Assembly: GCF_006345805.1 (NCBI RefSeq)
Contig: NC_043019.1
Location: forward strand, 2,046,001-2,110,000
DNA: 64,000 nt
Direction of reading: 5' to 3'
Source: Octopus sinensis
Lineage: Eukaryota
Part shown: in pieces, positions 920-56,126 of the stretch
Layout: the number at the start of each line of letters is the position of its first letter
Numbering within the stretch: the first letter of the stretch is position 1
Made by a program: the position numbers and the translations under genes
Notes under the pieces: model-generated
The model's database searches: none
Seen by the model: the letters and a program-made list of their open reading frames with translations, nothing else
What the model was told of the DNA's origin: nothing

Positions 920-2800
920 ATGAAGACCCTCATCAATAACCAAAGATCAGCTGAGGAGAAGTGGGCCATTGAAAAAATCAAACTCAACCCCAAAGTGTTC
1001 TTTTCATTTGCGAGGAAACGCAGGGTCACTGTCTCCACTGTAGGCCCTCTAATTGACGAAACTGGCACTCTCCAAGATAATGCCAAATCCATGGCCGAGA
1101 TACTGCAGAAACAATACTGCTCTGTTTTCAGCAATCCTGATATGGCCGATCTGGGCTGTATCAGTGATGTCAACCCCCAACACACTATATCGGACATAAC
1201 GTTTAGTGCCCCTGATGTCTTAGCGGCGATAAACGAAATAAAACACAATTCAGCAGTAGGCCCCGATAGGTTCCCTGCTTGTGTCCTGAAGGTGTGTCGA
1301 CACCAACTTGCATCTCCCCTTGCTAATCTGTGGAGAAACTCACTGGATGCTGGCTATTTTCCAAAAAACCTTCTGTCCCAGTCTGTTGTCCCAGTTTTCA
1401 AAAAGGGAAACAAGTCCCTTGCAGTGAATTACCGTCCGATCTCACTCACCTCTCATATCATCAAGGTATTTGAGAGGGTGGTGAGATCTCGAATAACCCA
1501 ATTTCTGGAAGGCAACAGACGGCTGATCTCCAACCAACATGGGTTCCGTAATGGAAGAGACTGCCTAACGCAGCTCCTGCATCACTTTGAGGACATTTTG
1601 AGAGCTTTGGGAGAGGGCTCCAACACCGATGTCATCTACCTTGATTTCAGTAAGGCCTTCGACAGGGTCGATCACAAGATCCTATTGAAAAAACTATCCA
1701 ACATTGGTGTCTCTGGAAAGTTATTGAAATGGATCAAGTGTTTCCTGACAGACAGATCTCAACATGTTGTAGTTGAAGGGGTAAAATCAAGCCCAGCCAA
1801 AGTCAGTAGTGGCGTTCCGCAAGGCACTGTGCTGGGCCCACTTCTTTTCATCATTTACATTAATGACATTAATGACATTAATGACATCATCAAGCACAGC
1901 AACATAAAAATCTTTGCAGATGACTCCAAGCTACAGAAGGTCATAAATGAGGCGAGTGACCGGACATGCCTTCAGTCAGATCTACTGGCTGTTATCCAAT
2001 GGGCAGAAAAAAACAATATGCTGCTGAACGAGGATAAATTTGAGCTAATCCACTTTGGAAAAGAGGATGCCCTGAAACTCCCATACTCCCTTCCTTCAGG
2101 TGAAACTCTCGCGGCGTCCAACAACATCAGAGACCTGGGAGTAATTGTGGACAACAACATAAGCTGGGCCACTCATATAAACACCAAAGTTGACATGGCC
2201 CGCAGAATGTGTTCCTGGATTCTCAGAACTTTCCAGTCGAGAGATATCCACACCATTATCCTTCTCTTCTCCACTTTTGCCCGACCCCACCTTGAATACT
2301 GTTGTCCACTGTGGTCTCCCCACACAATACAAGGTATCAAAAAAGTTGAAGCACCTCAAAGGGCAATCACAAAAAAGATAGATGGCATGACAGGCCTCGA
2401 CTATTGGGGTCGACTAGAAAAGCTAAAACTCTATTATCTCCAACGTCGTCGTGAGCGCTACATCATCTGCATGATGTGGAAAATATTCCATCAGCATTGC
2501 CCAAATGATGTTGGCATCACCTTTAAGGTACATCCAAGGCTTGGGCCCCGTGCCATCCGCCCAAAACAAAAATCGCACTCTCATCTCATAACAACAATAC
2601 GGCACAATTATTTCACCTCAAGTGGCCCCGCTCTCTTTAACATTACACCAAAACACATTAAAACAGAAACTGACCCTATAGGGTTCAAGAAGTCTTTGGA
2701 CAGATTCCTTCAAGAAATCCCGGATAAACCCCCTACACCCGGATACGTCTCTGTAAACAATAACTATCTACTTGAGTGGGCCATAGTGCCCAAATTCTGA
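920..2800 (+). CDS. Reverse transcriptase domain plus C-terminus of LINE ORF2 (626 aa open frame)
   Basis: Non-LTR RT motifs in correct order; C-terminus FKKSLDRFLQEIPDKPPTPGY is typical of CR1-group elements. Confidence 0.92.
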   Translation: MKTLINNQRSAEEKWAIEKIKLNPKVFFSFARKRRVTVSTVGPLIDETGTLQDNAKSMAEILQKQYCSVFSNPDMADLGCISDVNPQHTISDITFSAPDVLAAINEIKHNSAVGPDRFPACVLKVCRHQLASPLANLWRNSLDAGYFPKNLLSQSVVPVFKKGNKSLAVNYRPISLTSHIIKVFERVVRSRITQFLEGNRRLISNQHGFRNGRDCLTQLLHHFEDILRALGEGSNTDVIYLDFSKAFDRVDHKILLKKLSNIGVSGKLLKWIKCFLTDRSQHVVVEGVKSSPAKVSSGVPQGTVLGPLLFIIYINDINDINDIIKHSNIKIFADDSKLQKVINEASDRTCLQSDLLAVIQWAEKNNMLLNEDKFELIHFGKEDALKLPYSLPSGETLAASNNIRDLGVIVDNNISWATHINTKVDMARRMCSWILRTFQSRDIHTIILLFSTFARPHLEYCCPLWSPHTIQGIKKVEAPQRAITKKIDGMTGLDYWGRLEKLKLYYLQRRRERYIICMMWKIFHQHCPNDVGITFKVHPRLGPRAIRPKQKSHSHLITTIRHNYFTSSGPALFNITPKHIKTETDPIGFKKSLDRFLQEIPDKPPTPGYVSVNNNYLLEWAIVPKF

Positions 2801-4374: not shown

Positions 4375-4466
4375 CATACATACATACATACAATCACACA
4401 CACACAAGCTCATACATACATACAAACATAGACAACAACATACATACATACACACAAGCACATACA

Positions 4467-4534
<68 letters not shown>

Positions 4535-4643
4535 CATACATATATATATATACATATAAATATACATACATATATATACATATATATATATACATATACA
4601 TATATATATATATATATTATATATACATATATTATATATATAT

Positions 4644-4724
<81 letters not shown>

Positions 4725-4725
4725 T
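4375..4725. repeat. (TACA)n/(TA)n microsatellite
   Basis: Direct reading. Confidence 0.95.
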
Positions 4726-5049
4726 AGTTTGTAAAAGTTTTTAATTCTCATCTCACTAAATTTATCCAGCTATTGTGTATCTAGTACACTCTTCGCCTTG
4801 AATGTAATGATATATGTATAATATATGGCGTGTACTGGTACACCGGCGATTATAATTAATTTTATTGTATCGCATTTATCTTTGTTTACATATTCTCTCG
4901 ATAAATTTCTGACCGTTAGACGATATACCACAATCCCCTATTTTGTCGGGTTTGTTCGGAGTCTGCGCAGTGTTTTGAATAGTTTAGAAAGAGCATTTCG
5001 ATAGACGCACATGGATCTATTGGTATGGTCTTTCCATCGTTAACAGGAA

Positions 5050-5122
5050 TCTTACTGAAGAGCCAGCCTGAGTAAATAAATACTATTTTTATTACTGAAT
5101 TTGGCGAAACTGCAGTATAAGA
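5050..5122 (+). ncRNA. Type I hammerhead ribozyme, copy 1
   Basis: TCTTA-CTGAAGA-GCCA..TGGC-GAAA-CTGCAG-TA|TAAGA. Helix I TCTTA/TAAGA, canonical core, palindromic helix III ACTGCAGT, GUA cleavage after 5117. Confidence 0.88.
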
Positions 5123-5457
5123 AAAGTTAAGTTTGTAAAAGTTTTTAATTCTCATCTCACTAAATTTATCCAGCTATTGTGTTTCTAGTACACTCTTCGC
5201 CTTGAATGTAATGATATATGTATAATATATGGCGTGTACTGGTACACCGGCGATTATAATTAATTTTATTGTATCGCATTTATCTTTGTTTACATATTCT
5301 CTCGATAAATTTCTGACCGTTAGACGATATATATACCACAATCCCCTATTTTGTCGGGTTTGTTCGGAGTCTGCGCAGTGTTTTGAATAGTTTAGAAAGA
5401 GCATTTCGATAGACGCACATGGATCTATTGGTATGGTCTTTCCATCGTTAACAGGAA

Positions 5458-5530
5458 TCTTACTGAAGAGCCAGCCTGAGTAAATAAATACTATTTTTAT
5501 TACTGAATTTGGCGAAACTGCAGTATAAGA
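5458..5530 (+). ncRNA. Type I hammerhead ribozyme, copy 2
   Basis: Same as copy 1; predicted cleavage after 5525. Confidence 0.88.
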
Positions 5531-5861
5531 AAAGTTAAGTTTGTAAAAGTTTTTAATTCTCATCTCACTAAATTTATCCAGCTATTGTGTATCTAGTACA
5601 CTCTTCGCCTTGAATGTAATGATATATGTATAATATATGGCGTGTACTGGTACACCGGCGATTATAATTAATTTTATTGTATCGCATTTATCTTTGTTTA
5701 CATATTCTCTCGATAAATTTCTGACCGTTAGACGATATACCACAATCCCCTATTTTGTCGGGTTTGTTCGGAGTCTGCGCAGTGTTTTGAATAGTTTAGA
5801 AAGAGCATTTCGATAGACGCACATGGATCTATTGGTATGGTCTTTCCATCGTTAACAGGAA

Positions 5862-5934
5862 TCTTACTGAAGAGCCAGCCTGAGTAAATAAATACTATTT
5901 TTATTACTGAATTTGGCGAAACTGCAGTATAAGA
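5862..5934 (+). ncRNA. Type I hammerhead ribozyme, copy 3
   Basis: Same as copy 1; predicted cleavage after 5929. Confidence 0.88.
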
Positions 5935-6266
5935 AAAGTTAAGTTTGTAAAAGTTTTTAATTCTCATCTCACTAAATTTATCCAGCTATTGTGTATCTAG
6001 TACACTCTTCGCCTTGAATGTAATGATATATGTATAATATATGGCGTGTACTGGTACACCGGCGATTATAATTAATTTTATTGTATCGCATTTATCTTTG
6101 TTTACATATTCTCTCGATAAATTTCTGACCGTTAGACGATATACCACAATCCCCTATTTTGTCGGGTTTGTTCGGAGTCTGCGCAGTGTGTTTTGAATAG
6201 TTTAGAAAGAGCATTTCGATAGACGCACATGGATCTATGGTATGGTCTTTCCATCGTTAACAGGAA

Positions 6267-6341
6267 TCTTACTGAAGAGCCAGCCTGAGTAAATAAATAC
6301 TATTTTTATTACTGAATTTGGGACGAAACTGCAGTATAAGA
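6267..6341 (+). ncRNA. Type I hammerhead ribozyme, copy 4 (helix II disturbed)
   Basis: Core intact, but TTTGGC reads TTTGGGAC; predicted cleavage after 6336. Confidence 0.7.
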
Positions 6342-6506
6342 AAAGTTAAGTTTGTAAAGGTTTTAATTCTCATCTCACTAAATTATCCAGCTATTGTGTA
6401 TCTAGTACACTCTCGCCTTGAATGTAATGATATATGTATAATATATGGCGTGTACTGGTACACCGGCGATTATAATTAATTTTATTGTATCGCATTTATC
6501 TTTGTT

Positions 6507-6550
<44 letters not shown>

Positions 6551-6779
6551 TATATATTATATATATATATATATATCGGCCGCACAATTTCCAAGTTTTT
6601 TGCAGTCTCAGAGGTGTATACACATCTTCTGACTATGGACAACCAGCGAGGAGAAAATAAAGATGGCTTCTAGCTGAAGATATTCAGGATAATTCTTTGG
6701 TCAACACAAGATGCATAGATGCTTTGATAAATTAGAGTCACCAGATAATTTTAAATATATTTCCAGATGGTATACATTA

Positions 6780-6999
6780 TACCTATTTCTCTACTACCCA
6801 CAAGGGGCTAAACACAGACAGACAAAGGGATTAAGTCGATTATATCGTCCCCCAGTGCGTAACTGGTACTTATTTAATCGGCCCCGAAAAGATGAAAGGC
6901 AAAGTCGACCTCGGCGGAATTTGAACTCAGAGCGTAGCGGCAGACGAAATACTGCTAAGCGTTTCGCCCGGCGTGCTAACGTTTCTGCCAGCTAGCCGC
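6780..6999 (-). mobile_element. tRNA-derived SINE family A (Nin-domain-like body)
   Basis: Head GGCGAGCTGGCAGAAACG, B-box-like GAGTTCAAATTCC, body GACTTTGCCTTTCATC..AAGTACCAG, tail AAAGAAATAGG; many copies in window. Confidence 0.85.
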
Positions 7000-8189: not shown

Positions 8190-9146
8190 TGGCAGAAACG
8201 TTAGCACGCCGGGCGAAATGATTTGCAGTACTTCGTCTGCCGTTACGTTCTGAGTTCAAATTCCGCCGAGGTCGACTTTGCCTTTCATCCTTTCGAGGTC
8301 GATAAATTAAGTACCAGTTGCACACTGGAGTCGATGTAATCGACTTAGTCCGTTTGTATGCCCTTGTTTGTCCTCTCTGTGTTTAGCCCCTTGTGGGTAG
8401 TAAAGAAATAGGTATTTCGTCCGCCGCTACGTTCTGAGTTCAAATTCCGCCGAGGTCGACTTTGCCTTTCATCATTTCGGGGTTGATTAAATAAGTACCA
8501 GTTGCACACTGGTGTCGATGTAATCGACTTAATCCGTGTGTCTGTCCTTGTTTGTCCTCTCTGTGTTTAGCCCCTTGTGGGTAGTAAAGAAATAGGTATT
8601 TCGTCCGCCGCTACGTTCTGAGTTCAAATTCCGCCGAGGTCGACTTTGCCTTTCATCATTTCGGGGTTGATTAAATAAGTACCAGTTGCACACTGGTGTC
8701 GATGTAATCGACTTAATCCGTGTGTCTGTCCTTGTTTGTCCTCTCTGTGTTTAGCCCCTTGTGGGTAGTAAAGAAATAGGTATTTCGTCCGCCGCTACGT
8801 TCTGAGTTCAAATTCCGCCGAGGTCGACTTTGCCTTTCATCATTTCGGGGTTGATTAAATAAGTACCAGTTAATGGGATCGATATAATCGACTTAATCCG
8901 TGTGTCTGTCTTGTTTGTCTCTCTCTGTGCCCTTTAGCCCCTTGTGGGTAGTAAAGAAATAGGTATTTCGTCCGCCGCTACGTTCTGAGTTCAAATTCCG
9001 CCGAGGTCGACTTTGCCTTTCATCATTTCGGGGTTGATTAAATAAGTACCAGTTAATGGGATCGATATAATCGACTTAATCCGTGTGTCTGTCCTTGTTT
9101 GTCCTCTCTGTGTTTAGCCCTTTGTGATTAGTAAAGAAATAGGTAG
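8190..9146 (+). mobile_element. SINE family A: one head followed by five tandem bodies (~184-bp period)
   Basis: AATAGGTA junction at 8411, 8595, 8779, 8962 and 9142. Confidence 0.93.
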
Positions 9147-17036: not shown

Positions 17037-18328
17037 CGAGGGGCGTTCAATAAGTAATGCTCCTGACCCATTTCCCATAGCAGTAGAGCAACGAAACTTG
17101 GAACAGTTATTAGTCTTTTTCTACATAGGAACCACCCAGAATTACGCATTTCTCCCATCGTTTGATGCAGCTCTGAAGACCGTCTTTGTAGAAGACCCCA
17201 GCTTGGTCCTCCAACCACGACGTGACTTCAGAAATCAAGGCTGCATCATCTGGGAAACGCTTTCCTTTCAAAAACAACTTCATGGCTGGGAAGAGGTGAA
17301 AATCAGAGGGTGCAAGGTCAGGAGAGTAAGGGGGATGGGGGATGAGTTCATAGCCGCACGCCTGTGCTTCTGATCTGGCGACACGCGAGTTGTGGATCGG
17401 AGCGTTGTCCTGCAGGAGGAGGATGCCTTTGCTGATCTTGCCCCGCCTCTTGATTTTGATAGCTTCTCTTAATTTCCTCAAAAGTGAAGCATAATAGACT
17501 CCTGTAATTGTGGCACCCTTTGCCAGGAAATCTGTCTTCACTACTCCGTCCTGGTCCCAGAAAACTGTAAGCATGACCTTGCCAGCGGAGGGCTGCACCC
17601 TTGCCTTCTTTGGAGGAGGTGAGTCACGGTGCTTCCACTGCATTGACTGGGCTTTGGTCTCTGGATCATAGTGATGGACCCTGGTTTTATCCTATGCAAT
17701 CAGTCTTTTGAAAAGGTTTGACTCATCTTCTTGGCACATCTCCAAATTCATCCTCGAGCAATCGACGCGTTCTTGCTTCTGGAAAGGTGTGAGCAACCTG
17801 GGAATCCATCTGGCAGACACCTTTTGCATATGCAAATGGTCATGAATGATAGTTTCCACAGACCCGGTACTAATCTTGACCTCATGGGCTTTTTGGCGAA
17901 TAGTTATGCGTCGATCTTCCAAAATGGCAGCTTCTACTTGACAGACAGATGCCTCATCAATGGCAGAAGGGGGCGACCAGATCTGGGAGCTGTTTCCACA
18001 GAGTTCCGACCATGTTTGAATTCACGATGCCAGCGTTTTACAAGGTCATATGATGGGGCATCATCACCATAAGTTACTTTCATTTCATCAAAAGTCTCCC
18101 GTGGTGTGCGTCCTTTCAAATACTAAAACCGGATCACTGCTCGACATTCAACATGCTCCATTTCACACTTGACTCAGTTCAAACACCTGTAAATCAGAAA
18201 CCACAATTAGTTCAGAATTGTAATTTGCCACTTAATCTATAGAGATATAAATAATTGCACATGCAAAACTTCAGCTAGATCAAACAACTGCAAGTGGGTC
18301 AGGAGCATTACTTATTGAACGCCCCTCG
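17037..18328 (-). mobile_element. Full-length mariner transposon (1292 bp, DD34D), inactive
   Basis: Perfect 34-bp TIRs CGAGGGGCGTTCAATAAGTAATGCTCCTGACCCA; TA duplication at 17035-36 and 18329-30. Confidence 0.97.
17110..18161 (-). pseudogene. Mariner transposase with two stops and one frameshift
   Basis: MEHVECRAVIRF*, RSGRP (frameshift ~17970), WIPRLL, IA*DKT (first catalytic D region damaged), QDNAPIH, YSPDLAPSDFHLF. Confidence 0.95.
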
Positions 18329-19825: not shown

Positions 19826-21525
19826 ATTATATAAAAGGGCTTAGTAAAATAAATTACTTTGCCGCATACTGAACTCATTAGAAATAGCAGCTAAAAAAAC
19901 TTTTATTAAAACTATTCTAATACTTAAAGAAAACCTCTCTCATATAGTGTTTGCTCAATTCACTCACGAAAGTATGGGGGTAGAGATATTAAAAAATCAA
20001 ATGCAAAGGTTATTTGAGAACGTACGTTTCAAGATTAGTCAAAATCGACATTTCTATCATCAGCTCAGAACTCCCTGGTTTGGATTTGAAAACACTGAAA
20101 GTGGGAGCATACCCTTCGGCTTATTATCGCTTCTGAAGATCCGCTCGAAACTAACAGTGCCAGCAAACTCAAATATGCAAGCGAAGAATTTTGCTCTCCC
20201 CTTTCCACCAGCGTGGGTTAAAATCAGTAAACACTATGCTTTTTTTCGGTAAAATCCGAGGCATTTAAATAGAGAGAGATGAATTATAATTTCAACAATT
20301 GAGGGTAAAATTAATTAATTAATCAATTTCACCAAGTATTCAGTATGCAAAGGGACCATTTAAGGCGAATTCAATATTACATTATATAAAAGGGCTTAGT
20401 AAAATAAATTACTTTGCCGCATACTGAACTCATTAGAAATAGCAGCTAAAAAAACTTTTATAAAACTATTCTAATACTTAAAGAAAACCTCTCTCATATA
20501 GTGTTTGCTCAATTCAACTCACGAAAGTATGGGGTGGGTAGAGACATTAAAAATCAAATGCAAAGGTTATTTGAGAACGTACGTTTCAAGATTAGTCAAA
20601 ATCGACATTTCTATCATCAGCTCAGAACTCCCTGGTTTGGATTTGAAAACACTGAAAGTGGGAACATTACCCTTTCGGCTTCTATCGCTTCTGAAGATCC
20701 GCTCGAAACTAACAGTGCCAGCAAACTCAAATATGCAAGCGAAGAATTTCTGCTCTCCCCTTTCCACCTGCGGGGTTTTAAAAATCAGTAAACACTATGC
20801 TTTTTCGGTAAAATCATAGGCATTTAAATAGAGAGAGATGAATTATAATTTCAACAATTGAGGTAAAATTAATTAATTAATCAATTTCACAGTATTCAGT
20901 ATGCAAAGGGACCATTTAAGGCGATTCAAATTATTACATTATATTAAAAGGGCTTAGTAAAATAAATTACTTTGCCGCATACTGAACTCATTAGAAATAG
21001 CAGCTAAAAAAACTTTTATAAAACTATTCTAATACTTAAAGAAAACCTCCTCATATAGTGTGTTGCTCAATTCAACTCACGAAAGTATGGGGGTAGAGAC
21101 ATTAAAAATCAAATGCAAAGGTTATTTGAGAACGTACGTTTCAAGATTAGTCAAGATTAGTGTTTTCAAATCCAAACGAGGGGAGTTCTGAGCTGGTGAT
21201 AGAAATGTCGATTTTGACTAATCTTGAAACGTACGTTCTCAAATAACCTTTGCATTTGATTTTTTAATGTCTCTACCCCCATACTTCGTGAGTTGAATTG
21301 AGCAAACACTATATGAGAGAGGTTTTCTTTAAGTATTAGAAATAGTTTTATAAAAGTTTTTTTAGCTGCTATTCTAATGAGTTCAGTATGCGGCAAATAA
21401 TTTATTTTACTAAGCCCTTTATATAATGTAATAATTTGAATTCGCCTTAAATGGTCCCTTTGCATACTGAATACTTGGTGAAATGATTAATTAATTAATT
21501 TTACCCTCAATTGTTGAAATTATAT
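19826..21525. repeat. ~555-bp tandem array (about 2.4 units) ending in a fold-back copy; hammerhead on - strand
   Basis: AGGGCTTAG at 19836, 20391 and 20949; arms 20844-21154 and 21214-21524 are reverse complements. Confidence 0.92.
20015..20067 (-). ncRNA. Type I hammerhead motif (second copy 20572-20624 -; A6G variant 21189-21241 +)
   Basis: TGAG-CTGATGA-tAGA..GTC/GAC..TCTt-GAAA-CGTACG-TT|CTCA; palindromic helix III ACGTACGT. Confidence 0.7.
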
Positions 21526-21537
21526 ATATATATATAT

Positions 21538-21580
<43 letters not shown>

Positions 21581-21608
21581 ATATATATATAATATATATA
21601 TATATAAT

Positions 21609-21784
21609 ATTAATTAGACACAAAACCACTATATTGCAAATCAAACAAGGAAAGACTTAATCAATACATAAAAAATTTTAATAATTTTAATTATTTATTT
21701 ATTTACTTATATTAAAATTTTTTTATGTATTGATTAAGTCTTTCCTTATTTGATTGCAAAATAGTGGTTTTGTCTCTAATTAAT
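21609..21784. repeat. 75-bp-arm inverted repeat
   Basis: Arms 21609-21683 and 21710-21784 with a few mismatches. Confidence 0.9.
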
Positions 21785-21877
21785 TTATATAATATTTTAC
21801 TATAAAAATGGATTTCTATTCAATCCTAAATTGATTTTCCCTGTAATTTGGATTTATTCCCTAATATTTATTATTAT

Positions 21878-22170: not shown

Positions 22171-22649
22171 ATATATATATATATATATATATATCTTAAG
22201 ATGCTTGACTTCCTTTCTCTTCCGCAATTTCTTCATTTCCCCTTCCTATTTTCATCCATTTATTTTTCTCCACCCATCAGTTACTTCCTTACCTTTAAAT
22301 TCTTCAACAACCTTCACTCTCTGCATCGTGTGTGTATACGGTATATATATATATATATCGCCACTACCATTACGATTCTGCAATTTAAATTCCCAATTCA
22401 ACTTACTTTCTTCTTCAATTTCAACTCTCGATCGATGCCCGCAGCAAATTCAAAGAATATTCCAAAGTGCTATGTGCTTTAATTTGACATGTCTGCTGAC
22501 AGCTGGAATGTAATCTTTCAGCTGACAGGAACATTTGGAGGAGATTCATAGGAGAAGCAAATTGTATCCCTTTTGTAAACTGCAAGGCCTCACAGACAGG
22601 CAGACTCACTGTTGGTATAGAATATGAAACCAGTCCTGATTCATCAGCC

Positions 22650-24149
22650 TTGTTTTGGTTATCACCACTTCAAACTGCTGGAAAGCAGCATCCATATTTA
22701 TACAGCCAATGTGAGCCAATTCATGCCCGGAGTTTTGTACCCTGTCAGGATTCACCTGGAGTTAAGTTTCCTTACACAGCAAAGGTGACAGTCTTAAAGG
22801 AATTTGTGGTCTTGATGAGTGCACTTCAACAGAGTTCCAATGTATGTCGATCAAATTCTTCAAAAATGGAATTCTTCTTCAAACAGCCAGTGCCAATACC
22901 AAGTTATTTGATCGCTATTGTTGTTGGAGACTTGGCCAGTCGTAACATTGGACCCCGTAGCAAAGTATGGTCAGAGACGGAATTTCTTGACAAAGCAGCT
23001 TTTGAGTTCTCTGAGACTGAAGAGATGCTGAAAGTTGCTGAGAACCTGATGGGACCCTATGTATGGAGTCAATATGATCTTGTTGTGCTCCCACCATCTT
23101 TTCCTTATGGTGGCATGGAAAATCCCTGCCTCACATTTGTTACCCCAACACTCTTGGCTGGAGATAAATCACTAGCTAATGTTATTGCACATGAAATATC
23201 TCACAGTTGGACTGGTAACTTGGTCACTAATTCTACATTTGAACATTTCTGGTTAAATGAAGGCCATACGACATTTGTAGAGAGAAAAATTTGTGCTAAG
23301 CTAGGTTGTGGGGAACCATTAAGAAATCTTTTAGGCATGATTGGAAAAAAATCCTGGGCAGATTATGTTAATAATCCGAACACTAAGCCTAATTTTACTC
23401 GATTGGTACCCGAACTCAAAGGAGTATCTCCTGATGACTCCTTTTCTTCTGTGCCTTATGAAAAAGGCTATGCCTTACTCTATTATTTGGAAGACCTTGT
23501 TGGTGGACCAGAGGTTTTTGAACCATTTTTAAAAGCTTACATTGAACATTTCAAGTATCATTCAATTAACTCTCACCAATGGAAAGAGTTCCTGTTGTCT
23601 TACTTTACAGAAAAGGGCAAGGGCAGTGCTTTAAGGAGAGTGAACTGGAATGACTGGTTCTTTGAGACTGGAATGCCAGCAGTACCGATATCGTATCAGT
23701 CATGCCTTGCTGATGCTTGCCAGCAACTAAGTGAAATATGGTGTTCAACTGGAGACAGTAACTTTGGACAGTTCTCTTCATCAGATCTTGACCAATTCTC
23801 CACTCCACAGACGTTGGAATTCCTCAACCAGTTGATGGAACAGGACCCCTTTAGTTTGACCAAGATTGCTCATATGGAATCGGCATATCACTTATTTTCT
23901 CAGGGAAACTCAGAGATTCTGTTTCGGTGGTTAAGACTTTGTCTGCGAGCTAAATGGAACAAGTGCATTCCTCATGCTGTTAGCTTCATTAATAAACAAG
24001 GCCGGTTGAAATTTCTCCTACCAATATACGAACTTCTGTATCAGTGGGAAGACACCAGACAATTGGCAATTGATAATTTCCAAGAACACAAAGAGGAGAT
24101 GCACAATTTAGCTGTCACAAAGATTTCTAAAATGTTGAAACTTACATAA
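22650..24149 (+). CDS. LTA4H: Leukotriene A4 hydrolase / M1 aminopeptidase, uninterrupted frame lacking the N-terminus (probable retrocopy)
   Basis: Colinear with LTA4H as recalled: ETSPDSSALFWLSP..GKQHPYLYSQC, PPSFPYGGMENP (GGMEN 23109-23123), HEISH (23190-23204)..WLNEG, SSVPYEKG, NSEILFRWLRLC, QGRLKF. Frame is open from 22500; first ATG at 22815; the TTG start in the ORF track is not supported. Confidence 0.95.
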   Translation: MFWLSPLQTAGKQHPYLYSQCEPIHARSFVPCQDSPGVKFPYTAKVTVLKEFVVLMSALQQSSNVCRSNSSKMEFFFKQPVPIPSYLIAIVVGDLASRNIGPRSKVWSETEFLDKAAFEFSETEEMLKVAENLMGPYVWSQYDLVVLPPSFPYGGMENPCLTFVTPTLLAGDKSLANVIAHEISHSWTGNLVTNSTFEHFWLNEGHTTFVERKICAKLGCGEPLRNLLGMIGKKSWADYVNNPNTKPNFTRLVPELKGVSPDDSFSSVPYEKGYALLYYLEDLVGGPEVFEPFLKAYIEHFKYHSINSHQWKEFLLSYFTEKGKGSALRRVNWNDWFFETGMPAVPISYQSCLADACQQLSEIWCSTGDSNFGQFSSSDLDQFSTPQTLEFLNQLMEQDPFSLTKIAHMESAYHLFSQGNSEILFRWLRLCLRAKWNKCIPHAVSFINKQGRLKFLLPIYELLYQWEDTRQLAIDNFQEHKEEMHNLAVTKISKMLKLT

Positions 24150-26632: not shown

Positions 26633-27047
26633 ATTTCTATTTCTTTATTACCCACAAGGGACTAAACACAGAGAGGACAAACAAGGACAGACAAACGGAT
26701 TAAGTTGATTATATCGACCCCAGTGCGTAACTGGTACTTAATTTATCGACCCCGAAAGGATGAAAGGCAAAGTCGACCTCGGCGGAATTTGAACTCAGAA
26801 CGTAGCGGCAGACGAAATACCTATTTCTTTTCTACCCACAAGGGGCTAAACACAGAGGGGACAAACAAGGACAGACAAACGGTGTTTAAGTCGATAACAT
26901 CGACCCCAGTGCGTAACTGGTACTTATTTAATCAACCACAAAAGGATGAAAGGCAGAGTCGACCTCGGCGGAATTTGAACTCAGAACGTAATGGCAGACG
27001 AAATACGGCTACGCATTTCGCCCGGCGTGCTAACGATTCTGCCAGCT
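26633..27047 (-). mobile_element. SINE family A dimer (head plus two bodies)
   Basis: Body junction GAAATACCTATTTC at ~26814. Confidence 0.88.
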
Positions 27048-27447: not shown

Positions 27448-27863
27448 GGAGGCGAGCTGGCAGAAACGTTCGCACGCCGGCGAAATGCGTAGCTGTATTT
27501 CGTCTGTCGTTACGTTGTGAGTTCAAATTCCGCCGAGGTCGACTTTGCCTTTCATCCTTTCGGGGTCGATAAATTAAGTACCATTCACGCACTGGAGTCA
27601 ATGTAATCGACTTAATACCTATGTCTGTCCTTGTTTGTCCGCTCTATGTTTAGCCCCTTGTGGGTAATAAGGAAATAGGTATTTCGTCTGCCGTTACGTT
27701 CTGAGTTCAAATTCCGCCGAAGTCGACTTTGCCTTTCATCCTTTCGGGGTCGATTAAATAAGTACCAGTTACGCACTGGGGTCGATGTAATCGACTTAAT
27801 CCGTTTGTCTGTCCTTATTTGACCCCTCTGTGTTTAGCCCCTTGTGGGTAGTAAAGAAATAGG
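27448..27863 (+). mobile_element. SINE family A dimer inside one 13-bp target-site duplication
   Basis: TACGACTTGAAAG at 27435-27447 and 27864-27876. Confidence 0.9.
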
Positions 27864-28215
27864 TACGACTTGAAAGCGAATGTTCTCGCCTCAAGAACAA
27901 AGCGTTGTGGGAATACGATCGCGATATGATAATTCGGCTTAAATAAGTTATATATAATACAACATGTATTGAGTACTCTGTCTTTGGCACAATTTCTTTG
28001 TATATATGTGTGGGTGGTGTGTTTAAGTACACACACACATACATACACACACATAAGATATATAAATGCATACATATATAAGCAGTTATTTATATGTGTG
28101 TATGCGCATGTGTATTTATATGTGTATCTAAGCATTTATATATATGTAATTATATATATATAAGCATTTATAAACATATACATACATAAATGTACGTAAA
28201 TATATACACACACAC

Positions 28216-29286: not shown

Positions 29287-29801
29287 ATCAGTATATATAT
29301 TCATGTATCTATGTATATGTGCGTGTTAATGTATATGTATATATATACAGACACAGCGACACACATACATATGTATATATATATATATATATATATTCTC
29401 ATTCATTCACACGCACAAAACACAGGCACAAACACACACACACACACACATAGCTGATGATCGGAAACAAGTAACACTTTTTGAGTACTGGAAACTGGAG
29501 CTTTTCAGTTAAGATATATTAAAGGAACTTCCCAAATCTGTGTGTGGTGTGTGCGTGTGTGTGTGTTTTAAAAATCGTCAGGTGAAAGGTGAACAGAGAA
29601 ATAATCAATATTTTCCAGCAGATTCGAAAGCAATTATGCTAACCTCTATTGTTTTGCGTCACAGGACAAAGAATATCTTCACCTTTGCGACGAATATGTG
29701 TGCATAACGCACGCGATTTATCAGCACCAGAAATTTGGGCATACCCGGAATTTCGACATCGTTGTGCTTCGTCAGCCAGCAGCACGGTTGGGTTAATAAA
29801 A

Positions 29802-30221
29802 TACCTATTTCTTTACTACCCACAAGGGGCTAAACACAGAGAGGACAAACAAGGACAGACAAACGGATTAAGTCGATTACGTCGACCCCAGTGCGTAATG
29901 GTACTTAATTTATCGACTCCGAAAGGATGAAAGGCAAAGTCGACCTCGGCGGAATTTGAACTCAGAACGCAACGGCAGACAAGAATACCTACTTCTTTAC
30001 TTCCCACAAGGGGCTAAACACAGAGGGACAAACAAGGACAGACAACGGATTAAGTCGACATATCGACCCAGTGCGTAACTGCGTACTTAATTTATCGACC
30101 CCCGAAAGGATGAAAAGGCAAAGTCCGACCTCGGCGGAATTTGAACTCAGAACGCAACGGCAGACGAAATACCGCTAAGCATTTCGGCCGACGTGCGAAC
30201 GTTTCTGCCATCTCGCCGCCT
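29802..30221 (-). mobile_element. SINE family A dimer
   Basis: Body junction at ~29985. Confidence 0.87.
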
Positions 30222-31055: not shown

Positions 31056-31209
31056 TATTTCACACAAAAAAACCGAAATTACTTCTTGCCAACTCAATAT
31101 GGTGTGTGTGGTGTGGTGTGTTTGTATGTGGTGTGGCATATACATATAAACACACATACACGTATATCTATATCTGTATGTACATATATTGTGTATGTAT
31201 GTGTGTATG

Positions 31210-31242
<33 letters not shown>

Positions 31243-31244
<2 letters not shown>

Positions 31245-31864
31245 CAATGATAAATCTCAGAGCGAGTTATAAACAGTAGCGGTAACACATCGTGTTGCAT
31301 ATTTGCCATTTGAATATGGCTACCCATAAGGGTGGATGCTACTTAGTTTGTAGCCCCAGGAAGTATCTCCTCTAGTTGGCTATAGACACACTATCTGTGT
31401 CCTGTCAGTATTTGTGAAGGGGAGTCATCCTCCCCGTCTTCAACACATGATACCACGTACCCGAGTTCAAGGTGTTTACCTTCATCAGCGTGTGACAATC
31501 ATGGTTGTCGACGAGAAGTCAGATCCCTTCACAAATACATATACTTTTCCAGTGTCGATTTGACACTGATAATGAATAATAACCCTTATGGGTTAGCCAT
31601 ATTCAAATGGCAAATATGCAACACGATGTGTTACCGCTACTGTTTATAACTCGCTCTGAGATTTATCATTGTTTGATTTCACTTTTTCATTATCAGTGTC
31701 AAATCGACACTGGAAAAGGTATGTGTATTTGTGAAGGGATCTGACTTCTCGTCGACAACCATGATTGTCACACGCTGATGAAAGGTAAACACCTTGAAAC
31801 TCGGGTACGTGTGTATCATGTGTTGAAGACGGGGAGGATGACTCCCCTTCACAAATACTGACAG
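31243..31864. mobile_element. Two divergent, circularly permuted partial copies of a ~350-nt hammerhead-bearing repeat
   Basis: Order A(31243-31333) B C(31402-31576) A'(31582-31673) C'(31686-31864). Confidence 0.85.
31769..31813 (+). ncRNA. Canonical type I hammerhead ribozyme (damaged mirror copy 31453-31494 -)
   Basis: CACACG-CTGATGA-AAGGT-AAAC-ACCTT-GAAAC-TCGG-GTA|CGTGTG. Confidence 0.88.
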
Positions 31865-54797: not shown

Positions 54798-56126
54798 TAC
54801 ATAGAGGGAGACAGAGCTAATTCCACCACTTAATTACGATATATCTGTAAATAAATGAACAAAGGAAACGAAAAATGTTACCATAATTTGTAATATCATG
54901 AAACAGTAATCCGATTCAACAACCGAGTCAAGTGGAGGTGCAATGTCCCAGTGGTAAGGGCAGCGGACTCGCGGTCGGAGGATCGCGGTTTCGATTCCCA
55001 AACCGGGCGTTGTGTGTGTGTTTATTGAGCGAAAACACCTAAAGCTCCACGAGGCTCCGGCAGGGGGATGGGGTGGCGACCCCTGTTGTACTCTTTCGCT
55101 CCAGCTTTCTCTCACTCTTTCTTCCTGTTCCTTGTCCCCGACTTCCTACGCAACCGCTGAGCCTGGATGCGCATTCATCCATCCGTAATTGCTTTCGGTG
55201 TCGGGGGTTGACCTGCTTTCTCTTCTGCAGGTCTTACGAATAGCAAAGGACCACGTTTCGGACTTCTCCCACGACAGACAATCCTGAGGCGCGGTCTTGC
55301 GAGCTCTGGGAGGAAGACCGCTTCGCTCAACAAACAAACAAACAACAGAGTCAGAAGTATGATTTATGCTTATTTTAGAGATTTTATATACTTTCATCAC
55401 TATCGGAATTGCAGAATTGAAATTCCGAACTAACATTTCATTGTCATAAACAGAAGTCGTGTTTGTTACTTTCCAACTCATACAGACTAATTGTTTTTTG
55501 TTTTGCTTTTGTTTTTGTTTTTTTTTGTTCGTTTTTTGTTTTGTTTTTTTGTTATACTTAACGCTAACTGCAACTCTGTCATAGGATGTGTATGTTGCCA
55601 AGTCACACAGAGTTATCATATCATAACAACAACTCCCGACAGTGTATGTAGTAGCGTGCCAGGGTCCGCTTTTGAACAGTAGAAGATATATCTAAACATT
55701 CGTGATACACCTCCTCAAGCTCACATGATCACCACACTTCCATTCGTCTTTTAATTATCTGAAACATGATAGATAGCGAGAGCATATGACTAGTGATAGA
55801 GAAAATTATTGATTTGTTCCACTAAACTACGCTAGATGTACAGAACTCTTTCTCTTGCATGAAGTCCCAAACATGAATGTGAGTGTGTGTATGTGTGTGT
55901 GTGGAGGGGTTATTTTGAGGGCTGCTTTATGACAGAAATATATATAAATATTTAACATAGATACAGGAGTGGTTGTGTGGTGTGTAGATTACTTACCGAC
56001 CACATGGTTCCGGGTGCAGTACCACTGCATGACATATTGAGCAGGTGTCTTCCACTATATCTATCCCCGGGCCGACCAAAGCCTTGTGAGTGGATTTGGT
56101 AGGCGGAAACTGAAAGAAATCAGTCG

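Follow-up and report, generated by a model that had tools for sequence, protein, structure and literature searches.

The stretch of Octopus sinensis DNA considered here (assembly GCF_006345805.1, contig NC_043019.1, positions 2,046,001 to 2,110,000 of the forward strand; 64,000 nucleotides, hereafter the window) harbors a tandem array of a 404-bp unit at positions 4726..6508 on the + strand. The array is probably a retrozyme-type repeat of O. sinensis, i.e. its unit is non-coding and AT-rich and has a single type I hammerhead motif on the + strand. It has the build by which metazoan non-LTR retrozymes are structurally defined: a unit within the range of 150–450 bp, low GC content, a type I hammerhead in two or more consecutive units and neither long terminal repeats (LTR) nor an open reading frame (ORF). 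Three consecutive motifs are complete, which agrees with the operational criteria set by Li et al. (2026), and the GC content of 34% lies below the retrozyme limit of 45–50%.

The periodicity proposed in the first-pass annotation of this DNA was borne out by Tandem Repeats Finder (TRF), which places the array at 4726–6513 with a period of 404, 4.4 copies, 98% matches and a score of 3455. The sequence GAAACTGCAGTA is found four times in the array, and splitting at this sequence defines the units: a 392-nt partial unit, three units of 408, 404 and 407 nt and a terminal partial unit of 172 nt (4.4 units in total; GC content of the window is 36%). The first unit lacks the initial 12 nt, so unit position 13 is where the array begins, 12 nt beyond the equivalent of the predicted cut site and within (TA)n, as was also noticed before; it ends at approximately unit position 172. 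Unit alignment shows that unit 0 is identical to unit 2 over their common length and that every difference between the units is private to a single one. Unit 1 carries an inserted ATAT besides one substitution; in unit 3, GT and GA are inserted and a T is deleted; unit 4 has three 1-nt deletions and one substitution. Nearly all of these differences are indels of 1–4 nt in short runs, clustered in the two 3'-most units (window 5930–6508). They may be real mutations, slippage of a reverse transcriptase (RT) or errors of long-read assembly, which look the same in a sequence. Similarly, the high identity of the units could reflect either youth of the array or its homogenisation.

Both ends of the array fall in microsatellite tracts, as seen by TRF and by sequence: (AT)n at 4462..4726 upstream, presumed to be the insertion target site, and (TA)n at 6507..6576 downstream. 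Sequence of this kind makes up only 3.6–4.8% of the window. At the 3' junction the array reads TTTA/TATATA as compared with TTTACATAT in the unit, which would leave room for microhomology priming on (TA)n. The ORFs of the array are short, with no family match and no homologues; one of them is a spurious ORF of 129 amino acids. No terminal repeats were found besides the units themselves (primer-binding sites and polypurine tracts were not specifically scanned for), and no tRNA-like or RNA polymerase III part was found in or near the unit.

The ribozyme region of the unit has the consensus 5'-UUAAC-AGGAA-UCUUA-CUGAAGA-GCCAG...UUGGC-GAA-ACUGCAGU-A↓UAAGA-AAA-GUUAA-3', where the arrow marks the predicted cut. 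The sequence around this cut is ...GCAGUA↓UAAGAAAAG... or, in a wider view, ...ACUGCAGUA↓UAAGAAAAGUUAAG.... The cuts are predicted after positions 5117, 5525, 5929 and 6336 of the + strand; these are the positions of the first-pass annotation, and the occurrences of GAAACTGCAGTA confirm them. Motif 1 (5040..5130, +) is a complete type I hammerhead that matches the descriptor given below. Its distal stem is formed by UUAAC (5040–5044) and GUUAA (5126–5130) and is separated by an internal loop (AGGAA/AAA) from the 5-bp helix I, which is formed by UCUUA (5050–5054) and UAAGA (5118–5122). The CUGAAGA segment (5055–5061) is followed by helix II with its extension (5062–5105, closed by the pair G5062–C5105), by GAA (5106–5108) and by ACUGCAGU (5109–5116), in which the pair A5109–U5116 corresponds to A15.1–U16.1. 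Next comes A17 (A5117), after which the cut is predicted. Motif 2 (5448..5538, +, predicted cut after A5525) and motif 3 (5852..5942, +, predicted cut after A5929) are identical in sequence to motif 1 and match the descriptor as well.

The conserved core, namely CUGAAGA (C3–A9), G12, A13, A14, the pair A15.1–U16.1 and A17 (cleavage triplet GUA), is identical in four motifs out of four. In motifs 1–3 the closing pair G10.1–C11.1 is present and the order of the helices corresponds to type I (helix I is open, helices II and III are closed), so for these three motifs the earlier assertion of an intact core and type I topology holds at every conserved position. Internal loops are located at the right distances for a possible tertiary contact of loop 1 with loop 2, one after 5 bp of helix I (AGGAA/AAA) and the other after 5 bp of helix II. 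In motif 2, helix II (5470..5513, +) is formed by four Watson-Crick pairs and a G·U pair, followed by an internal loop and an A/U-rich hairpin extension; the whole region comprises 44 nt as compared with about 14 nt in the Rfam consensus. The helix III segment ACUGCAGU (5517..5524 in motif 2, +) is a self-complementary 8-mer. In cis it gives 2 bp and a UGCA tetraloop, and between two copies it gives an 8-bp duplex. The palindrome described in the first-pass annotation is thus real, but its folding into a 4-bp hairpin is impossible because no loop would be left.

Motif 4 (6257..6349, +, nominal cut after A6336) is damaged. Its core, helix I and helix III are intact, and helix II is broken by a 2-nt GA insertion (6322..6323, +; evident from the unit alignment and the sequence) beside position 11.1. 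The motif reads UUUGG-GA-CGAAAC at this place, pairs 10.2/11.2 and onward are lost, and only the closing pair of helix II stays in register. This motif fails the descriptor, and its Rfam score is 18.5 bits with one helix II pair aligned, as compared with 21.2 bits for motif 2. The earlier statement that each complete unit has a full motif is consequently true for three motifs of the four. The cut-to-cut lengths of 408, 404 and 407 nt were correct according to the unit alignment, but release of the 407-nt monomer is doubtful because helix II of motif 4 is broken.

The significance of the motif was estimated with an RNAmotif-style descriptor requiring CUGANGA, 4-bp helix II, GAAA, the pair A15.1–U16.1 with one further pair, H17 and 4-bp helix I. 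In the real window it matched motifs 1–3 and one unrelated site (31771–31811). Dinucleotide-shuffled windows gave on average 0.023 matches on both strands (300 shuffles), and the shuffled two-unit sequence gave 5e-5 matches (20,000 shuffles). In addition, the motif possesses features that the descriptor does not demand: the fifth pair of helix I, the 5-bp distal stem and the 8-nt palindromic helix III. The hammerhead motif is non-random. The Rfam model RF00163 (Hammerhead_1) aligns to motif 2 over its full length (positions 1–45 of 45) with 21.2 bits and E=0.0031 in a 106-nt search of this preselected region. Helix III of the Rfam consensus is itself a zero-loop palindrome (ACGcgCGU, <<<<>>>>), that is an architecture of the dimer type.

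Folding of the motif alone and in pairs, which had been proposed as a check, gave a consistent picture. For a 98-nt segment with one motif, the fold of minimum free energy (MFE) is inactive and has -16.9 kcal/mol, and the forced hammerhead fold reaches -10.4 kcal/mol. In the inactive fold UACUG (positions 2.2, 2.1, C3, U4 and G5) pairs with CAGUA (the 3' strand of helix III and A17), and both the core and the cleavage site are predicted to be sequestered. The MFE of each of motifs 1–3 is -14.7 kcal/mol. Cofolding of two copies results in -39.1 kcal/mol as compared with -33.8 kcal/mol for two separate monomers, the gain being provided by the 8-bp ACUGCAGU duplex. A double hammerhead is formally a pseudoknot, which is infeasible in a folder of nested structures, and the energies of the helix III duplex and hairpin were used instead: the isolated helix III hairpin has +2.9 kcal/mol and the self-duplex -11.1 kcal/mol. 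These calculated values support the view that pairing of two motifs via helix III is thermodynamically favoured, as in the classic double hammerhead, and they bear out energetically the suggestion that the palindromic helix III allows dimers to form. Canonical metazoan type I hammerheads have helix III of 1–2 bp with a palindromic loop of 2–4 nt; they are poor ribozymes as monomers and form an active double hammerhead when a second tandem copy is nearby (PMC4209133, PMC6155905). With its perfect 8-nt palindromic helix III and the predicted competing inactive fold, the array, if active, would be a clean natural test case for the double hammerhead.

The array lies in sense orientation inside the 67.7-kb annotated intron of a gene for a leukotriene A-4 hydrolase (LTA4H)-like protein. 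The locus of this gene, L001, corresponds to GCA_006345805.1, CM016881.1:1990612-2080149, and the window starts at its position 55390. Two coding pieces are annotated for the gene, L001 10001–10165 and L001 77889–79535 (window 22500–24146), and the ORF at 22650–24149 of the window is 100% identical to "leukotriene A-4 hydrolase-like [Octopus sinensis]". The intronic site is ordinary, since approximately 43% of Xenopus retrozyme copies are intronic; at the same time, location in an intron offers a source of transcription without an own promoter. The gene itself (L001 10001–79538) consists of a short first exon and a single 1.65-kb exon for amino acids 54–602, and at least 16 exons are coding in the homologue of Argonauta hians (L002). 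On this comparison the LTA4H-like gene of O. sinensis would be either a retrogene-like copy with an acquired upstream exon or a product of massive intron loss.

Three other (TA)n-associated elements with minimal hammerheads are present in the same 145 kb of O. sinensis DNA. An inverted repeat at 31402–31864 starts at (TA)n (31163–31243), and its right arm carries the minimal type I hammerhead at 31771–31811 (+), CACG-CUGAUGA-AAGG..CCUU-GAAA-CUCGGG-UA↓CGUG; the mirrored hammerhead of the left arm is decayed, an A being lost from GAAA. Rfam finds no hammerhead in 31402–31864, and its only match there is a sub-threshold one to the microRNA precursor MIR7504 (49 vs 83 bits), for which the long hairpin is probably responsible. 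The same annotated intron contains, about 17 kb upstream of the array, a 5.1-kb near-perfect palindrome (L001 38013–43156) with no ORF of 70 amino acids or longer in its interior. Minimal 43-nt hammerheads lie near its outer ends, at L001 43011–43053 (+) and 38113–38155 (-); one of these ends abuts (TA)n and the other is within ~70 bp of a (TA)n run. Tails of this element with 5' truncation also occur in the window, as an inverted pair at ~21610–21790 beside (TA)n 21521–21610. The palindromic element looks like a non-autonomous element of the Penelope type. Helix III segments of the neighbouring minimal motifs, ACUCGGGU and ACGAUUGU, are self-complementary once G·U pairs are admitted. The published signature of Penelope-like elements consists of inverted pairs, 5' truncation, (TA)n targets and minimal hammerheads of the dimer type (PMC8557442, PMC4209133), and (TA)n is their reported preferred target (PMC8557442). 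The sister species O. vulgaris possesses 31 recently active Penelope-like families (PMC13282606).

Proceeding from these data, the following scheme can be proposed for the retrozyme-type repeat. The array would be transcribed as a multimer, and the LTA4H-like pre-mRNA would be the most economical source of the transcript, though an own promoter is also possible. A lone motif would prefer the inactive UACUG/CAGUA fold, as the calculated energies suggest. Two neighbouring motifs would share the 8-bp ACUGCAGU helix III, and each of them would then cut after A17 of GUA. Cleavage at motifs 1–3 (A5117, A5525 and A5929) would free monomers of 408 and 404 nt having 5'-OH and 2',3'-cyclic phosphate ends, according to the established chemistry of hammerheads. 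By analogy with retrozymes of coral, mussel and axolotl (PMC7229834), the monomers may be circularised by a tRNA ligase of the RtcB type, and refolding to the inactive UACUG/CAGUA conformer may protect the circle, in line with an idea on regulation from the hammerhead literature (PMC4209133). Finally, circles or multimers could be copied into (TA)n tracts by a Penelope-like RT with GIY-YIG endonuclease. The array ends, being out of phase with the cut site, fit a template that was a circle or an uncleaved multimer and not a cleaved linear monomer. Insertion into (TA)n and the Penelope-type hammerheads in the neighbourhood give indirect support to mobilisation by a Penelope-like RT: the (TA)n target is common to the array and its neighbours yet occupies a small part of the window, which argues indirectly that the same machinery inserted the array. 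A much more far-reaching proposal is that of an active cephalopod retrozyme driven by the host intron, with a multimer made from LTA4H-like pre-mRNA, cleavage by the double hammerhead exclusively, an inactive fold that protects the circle and abundant unannotated circular RNA in tissues; taken as a whole, we consider it rather improbable.

Further copies of the unit were sought in several ways. In the window no other copy was found by halves of the motif with up to 3 mismatches or by blastn of the unit, the only matches being low-complexity TA sequence. A family-specific pattern had 0 matches in metagenome and viral contigs, and the spurious 129-aa ORF of the array used as a protein query had no match in other assemblies. 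A generic pattern (CTGANGAG...CGAAACTGCAGTA) gave 69 loci in public collections. A complete type I hammerhead is present in 8 of them, without relation to the octopus unit, and none of three checked is in a tandem repeat. These compact canonical metagenome hammerheads (contigs L007, L014, L017, L036, L040, L053, L061 and L056) end in GAAACUGCAGUA, as the octopus motif does, and have helix I of 6 bp and helix II of 4–5 bp, with no tandem repeat at the motif in L007, L040 and L056. The motif of L056 adjoins (TAGGGT)4, which is reminiscent of telomere-associated Penelope-like elements lacking the endonuclease.

Several observations weigh against the assignment of the array to retrozymes. Only one locus was seen, with no further copy in the window, in an extra 55 kb of O. 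sinensis DNA (about 145 kb in total) or in the Argonauta hians locus, and these 145 kb contain no Penelope-like ORF. Rfam found nothing in the whole window at the gathering score and nothing in the 1.9-kb region 4700–6600 at E<=10; the RF00163 match, visible only in the 106-nt searches with their lax filters, is sub-threshold (21.2 bits with the gathering score of 34). The Rfam check suggested in the first-pass annotation hence yielded the full-length alignment but not the threshold. What lowers the score is loop 2, for which the model provides 8 nt and in which the octopus motif carries an insertion of 38 nt; the gathering score of RF00163 is a detection cut-off and not a structural criterion. 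The curated threshold misses hammerheads with a long helix II insertion, and descriptor-based scans are therefore needed for annotation of such motifs. One motif of the four is already damaged, and the units are too alike for covariation, hence there is no evolutionary sign of selection on the motif. The 404-nt monomer is no more structured than its shuffles (z=-0.40 on the + strand; z=-0.43 both on the - strand and in the circular form). The circular monomer has an MFE of -79.5 kcal/mol with 61% of bases paired, the same 61% being found in shuffles; in the literature, circles of retrozymes are said to be highly self-paired, a claim not benchmarked against shuffles (PMC7229834). Eight of nine similarly predicted Xenopus dimers failed to cleave in vitro, and as just one of the nine did cleave, the prior for activity of the octopus motif has to be tempered.

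A rival explanation is that the array is a relic, i.e. a hammerhead-bearing piece of a Penelope-like terminal repeat or of an old retrozyme amplified locally by unequal crossing-over or slippage in the microsatellite. A relic would yield no processed or circular RNA and would have no mobility, its motif being intact only through recent duplication. The single locus in 145 kb, the slippage-prone (TA)n setting, the broken motif with indels accumulating in the 3' units, the monomer without excess of secondary structure and the eight inactive Xenopus dimers all agree with this explanation. It accounts less well for the perfection of three motifs, which extends to the distal stem of helix I; the private variants of the units are less compatible with unequal exchange in steps than with one burst from a single template, and the ends out of phase with the cut site are as expected from copying of a circle or multimer. 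Weighing these points, we regard a relic as possible though unlikely. According to another explanation, the array is a tandem pseudo-LTR of an autonomous Penelope-like element with its ORF elsewhere or deleted. Penelope-like elements do form partial tandems, have pseudo-LTR hammerheads and prefer (TA)n (PMC8557442), and Xenopus retrozymes are homologous to Penelope-like pseudo-LTRs. But no ORF for RT or GIY-YIG adjoins the array, the only RT of the window (920–2800) is LINE-like by inspection (LINE, long interspersed nuclear element), and four consecutive ORF-less 404-bp units fit the layout of a retrozyme. Moreover, the minimal form of the hammerhead is usual in Penelope-like elements, whereas the motif of the array has full helix I, the internal loop and the distal stem (PMC4209133). 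This origin appears improbable to us.

The unit of about 400 nt and its head-to-tail multimer also resemble rolling-circle replicons, and hammerheads are reported in metazoan deltavirus-like RNAs (PMC7936874). The array might then be endogenised cDNA of a viroid-like or deltavirus-like circular RNA replicon with a hammerhead. However, the opposite strand matches neither any Rfam ribozyme family nor the hammerhead descriptor, no ORF has a protein family match, and the GC content of 34% together with structure at the level of shuffles is unlike rod-like replicons. A rod-like replicon was rejected, as folding of the whole monomer gave no signal on either strand in linear or circular form, and the replicon origin in general is very improbable. 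The last explanation to be weighed is a chance match of the motif in an ordinary satellite, for which the silence of Rfam at the gathering threshold could speak. It is effectively refuted by the expectation of 5e-5 descriptor matches per shuffled two-unit sequence; the Rfam alignment over the full model with E=0.0031 and the features that go beyond the descriptor (fifth pair of helix I, distal stem and palindromic helix III) argue against it too, and its probability is negligible. The retrozyme-type repeat remains the reading that we prefer.

Several other elements are located in the window. The ORF at 920–2800 contains the Pfam domain RVT_1 (E=5.6e-30), which is a generic RT domain only, and an exact look-up of this ORF found no record. 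The ORF upstream of it (34–834) has APE-/endonuclease-like motifs and no Pfam match. By inspection of the RT sequence and the upstream ORF, the element 34–2800 looks like a LINE. The RT was considered as a Penelope-like enzyme beside the array, and this was rejected: the sequence is LINE-like by inspection, and microsatellites lie between the RT and the array. A remnant of a mariner-type transposase is found at 17110–17643 (-) (Pfam Transposase_1, E=3.7e-22). A 184–186-bp unit similar to short interspersed nuclear elements forms tandem arrays of 2–5 copies in both orientations at 8228–9145, 26637–27006, 27495–27865 and 29798–30173, and a fragment of this unit lies at ~6780–6900, just downstream of the hammerhead array.

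No description of a cephalopod or octopus hammerhead or retrozyme, octopus satellite DNA included, was found in the searchable literature. Cephalopods are not mentioned in the supplement of the 2020 retrozyme paper (PMC7229834), and ribozymes are not mentioned in the detailed 2026 repeat annotation of O. vulgaris (PMC13282606). Repeats make up about two-thirds of cephalopod genomes. The supposition of the first-pass annotation that this family is undescribed is supported as far as cephalopods are concerned, but the class as such, with examples from molluscs, was described in 2020 (PMC7229834). The octopus array is apparently an undescribed example of the known animal retrozyme repeats and not a new kind of element. 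It leaves the knowledge of how retrozymes work unchanged; if it is active, cephalopods would join the hosts of ribozyme-derived circular RNAs and of Penelope-dependent non-autonomous retroelements.

Metazoan non-LTR retrozymes are low-GC tandem repeats of ~150–450 bp with a type I hammerhead that give 170–400-nt RNAs in linear and circular form (PMC7229834). The octopus array shares with them the head-to-tail low-GC repeats, the absence of ORF and LTR and the single type I hammerhead per unit. It differs in the cephalopod host, in the 44-nt extended hairpin of helix II in place of a short stem-loop and in the monomer that is not unusually self-paired. The repeats of Mytilus galloprovincialis are 350–390 bp long (Cervera and de la Peña 2020, PMC7229834); as with the octopus array, their host is a mollusc. 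They coexist with elements that carry minimal hammerheads of the Penelope type, and putative elements of this sort lie in the 145 kb of O. sinensis DNA. Repeats of 330–500 bp with type I hammerheads are known from other invertebrates, Sm-alpha of Schistosoma and pDo500 of Dolichopoda (PMC2837043, PMC4209133). The octopus unit has no sequence similarity to them, and no RNA polymerase III or tRNA-like part was found in it. The minimal hammerheads of Penelope-like pseudo-LTRs (Cervera and de la Peña 2014, PMC4209133) resemble the octopus motif in type I topology, self-complementary helix III, dimer logic and association with (TA)n. The octopus hammerhead, in contrast, is canonical and not minimal, has no RT or endonuclease ORF attached and occurs in a multi-unit tandem.

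As to the ribozyme itself, the octopus motif has in common with RF00163 the 6-position helix I, CUGAnGA, helix II closed by G–C, GAAAC, the zero-loop palindromic helix III and GU followed by H; it deviates from the model in that loop 2 is enlarged by the insertion of 38 nt and the outermost position of helix I is A·A. Newt satellite 2 and the axolotl retrozymes (HHR_Amex1/2) have units of ~330–350 bp as compared with 404 bp in octopus (PMC4209133, PMC6155905). The double hammerhead of the newt satellite goes back to Forster 1988, as cited in PMC4209133 and PMC6155905. The octopus motif differs from these in its GUA triplet and has no sequence homology to them. The likeness consists in very short helix III with a palindromic tetraloop, in weakness of the single motif and in the extension of helix III by a tandem pair; with 2 bp and UGCA the octopus helix III corresponds to HHR_Amex2 and the invertebrate type, the newt type having 1 bp. 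The closest described relatives of the array are thus the mussel repeats of 350–390 bp by host, and the newt and axolotl motifs along with other canonical type I motifs by ribozyme architecture.

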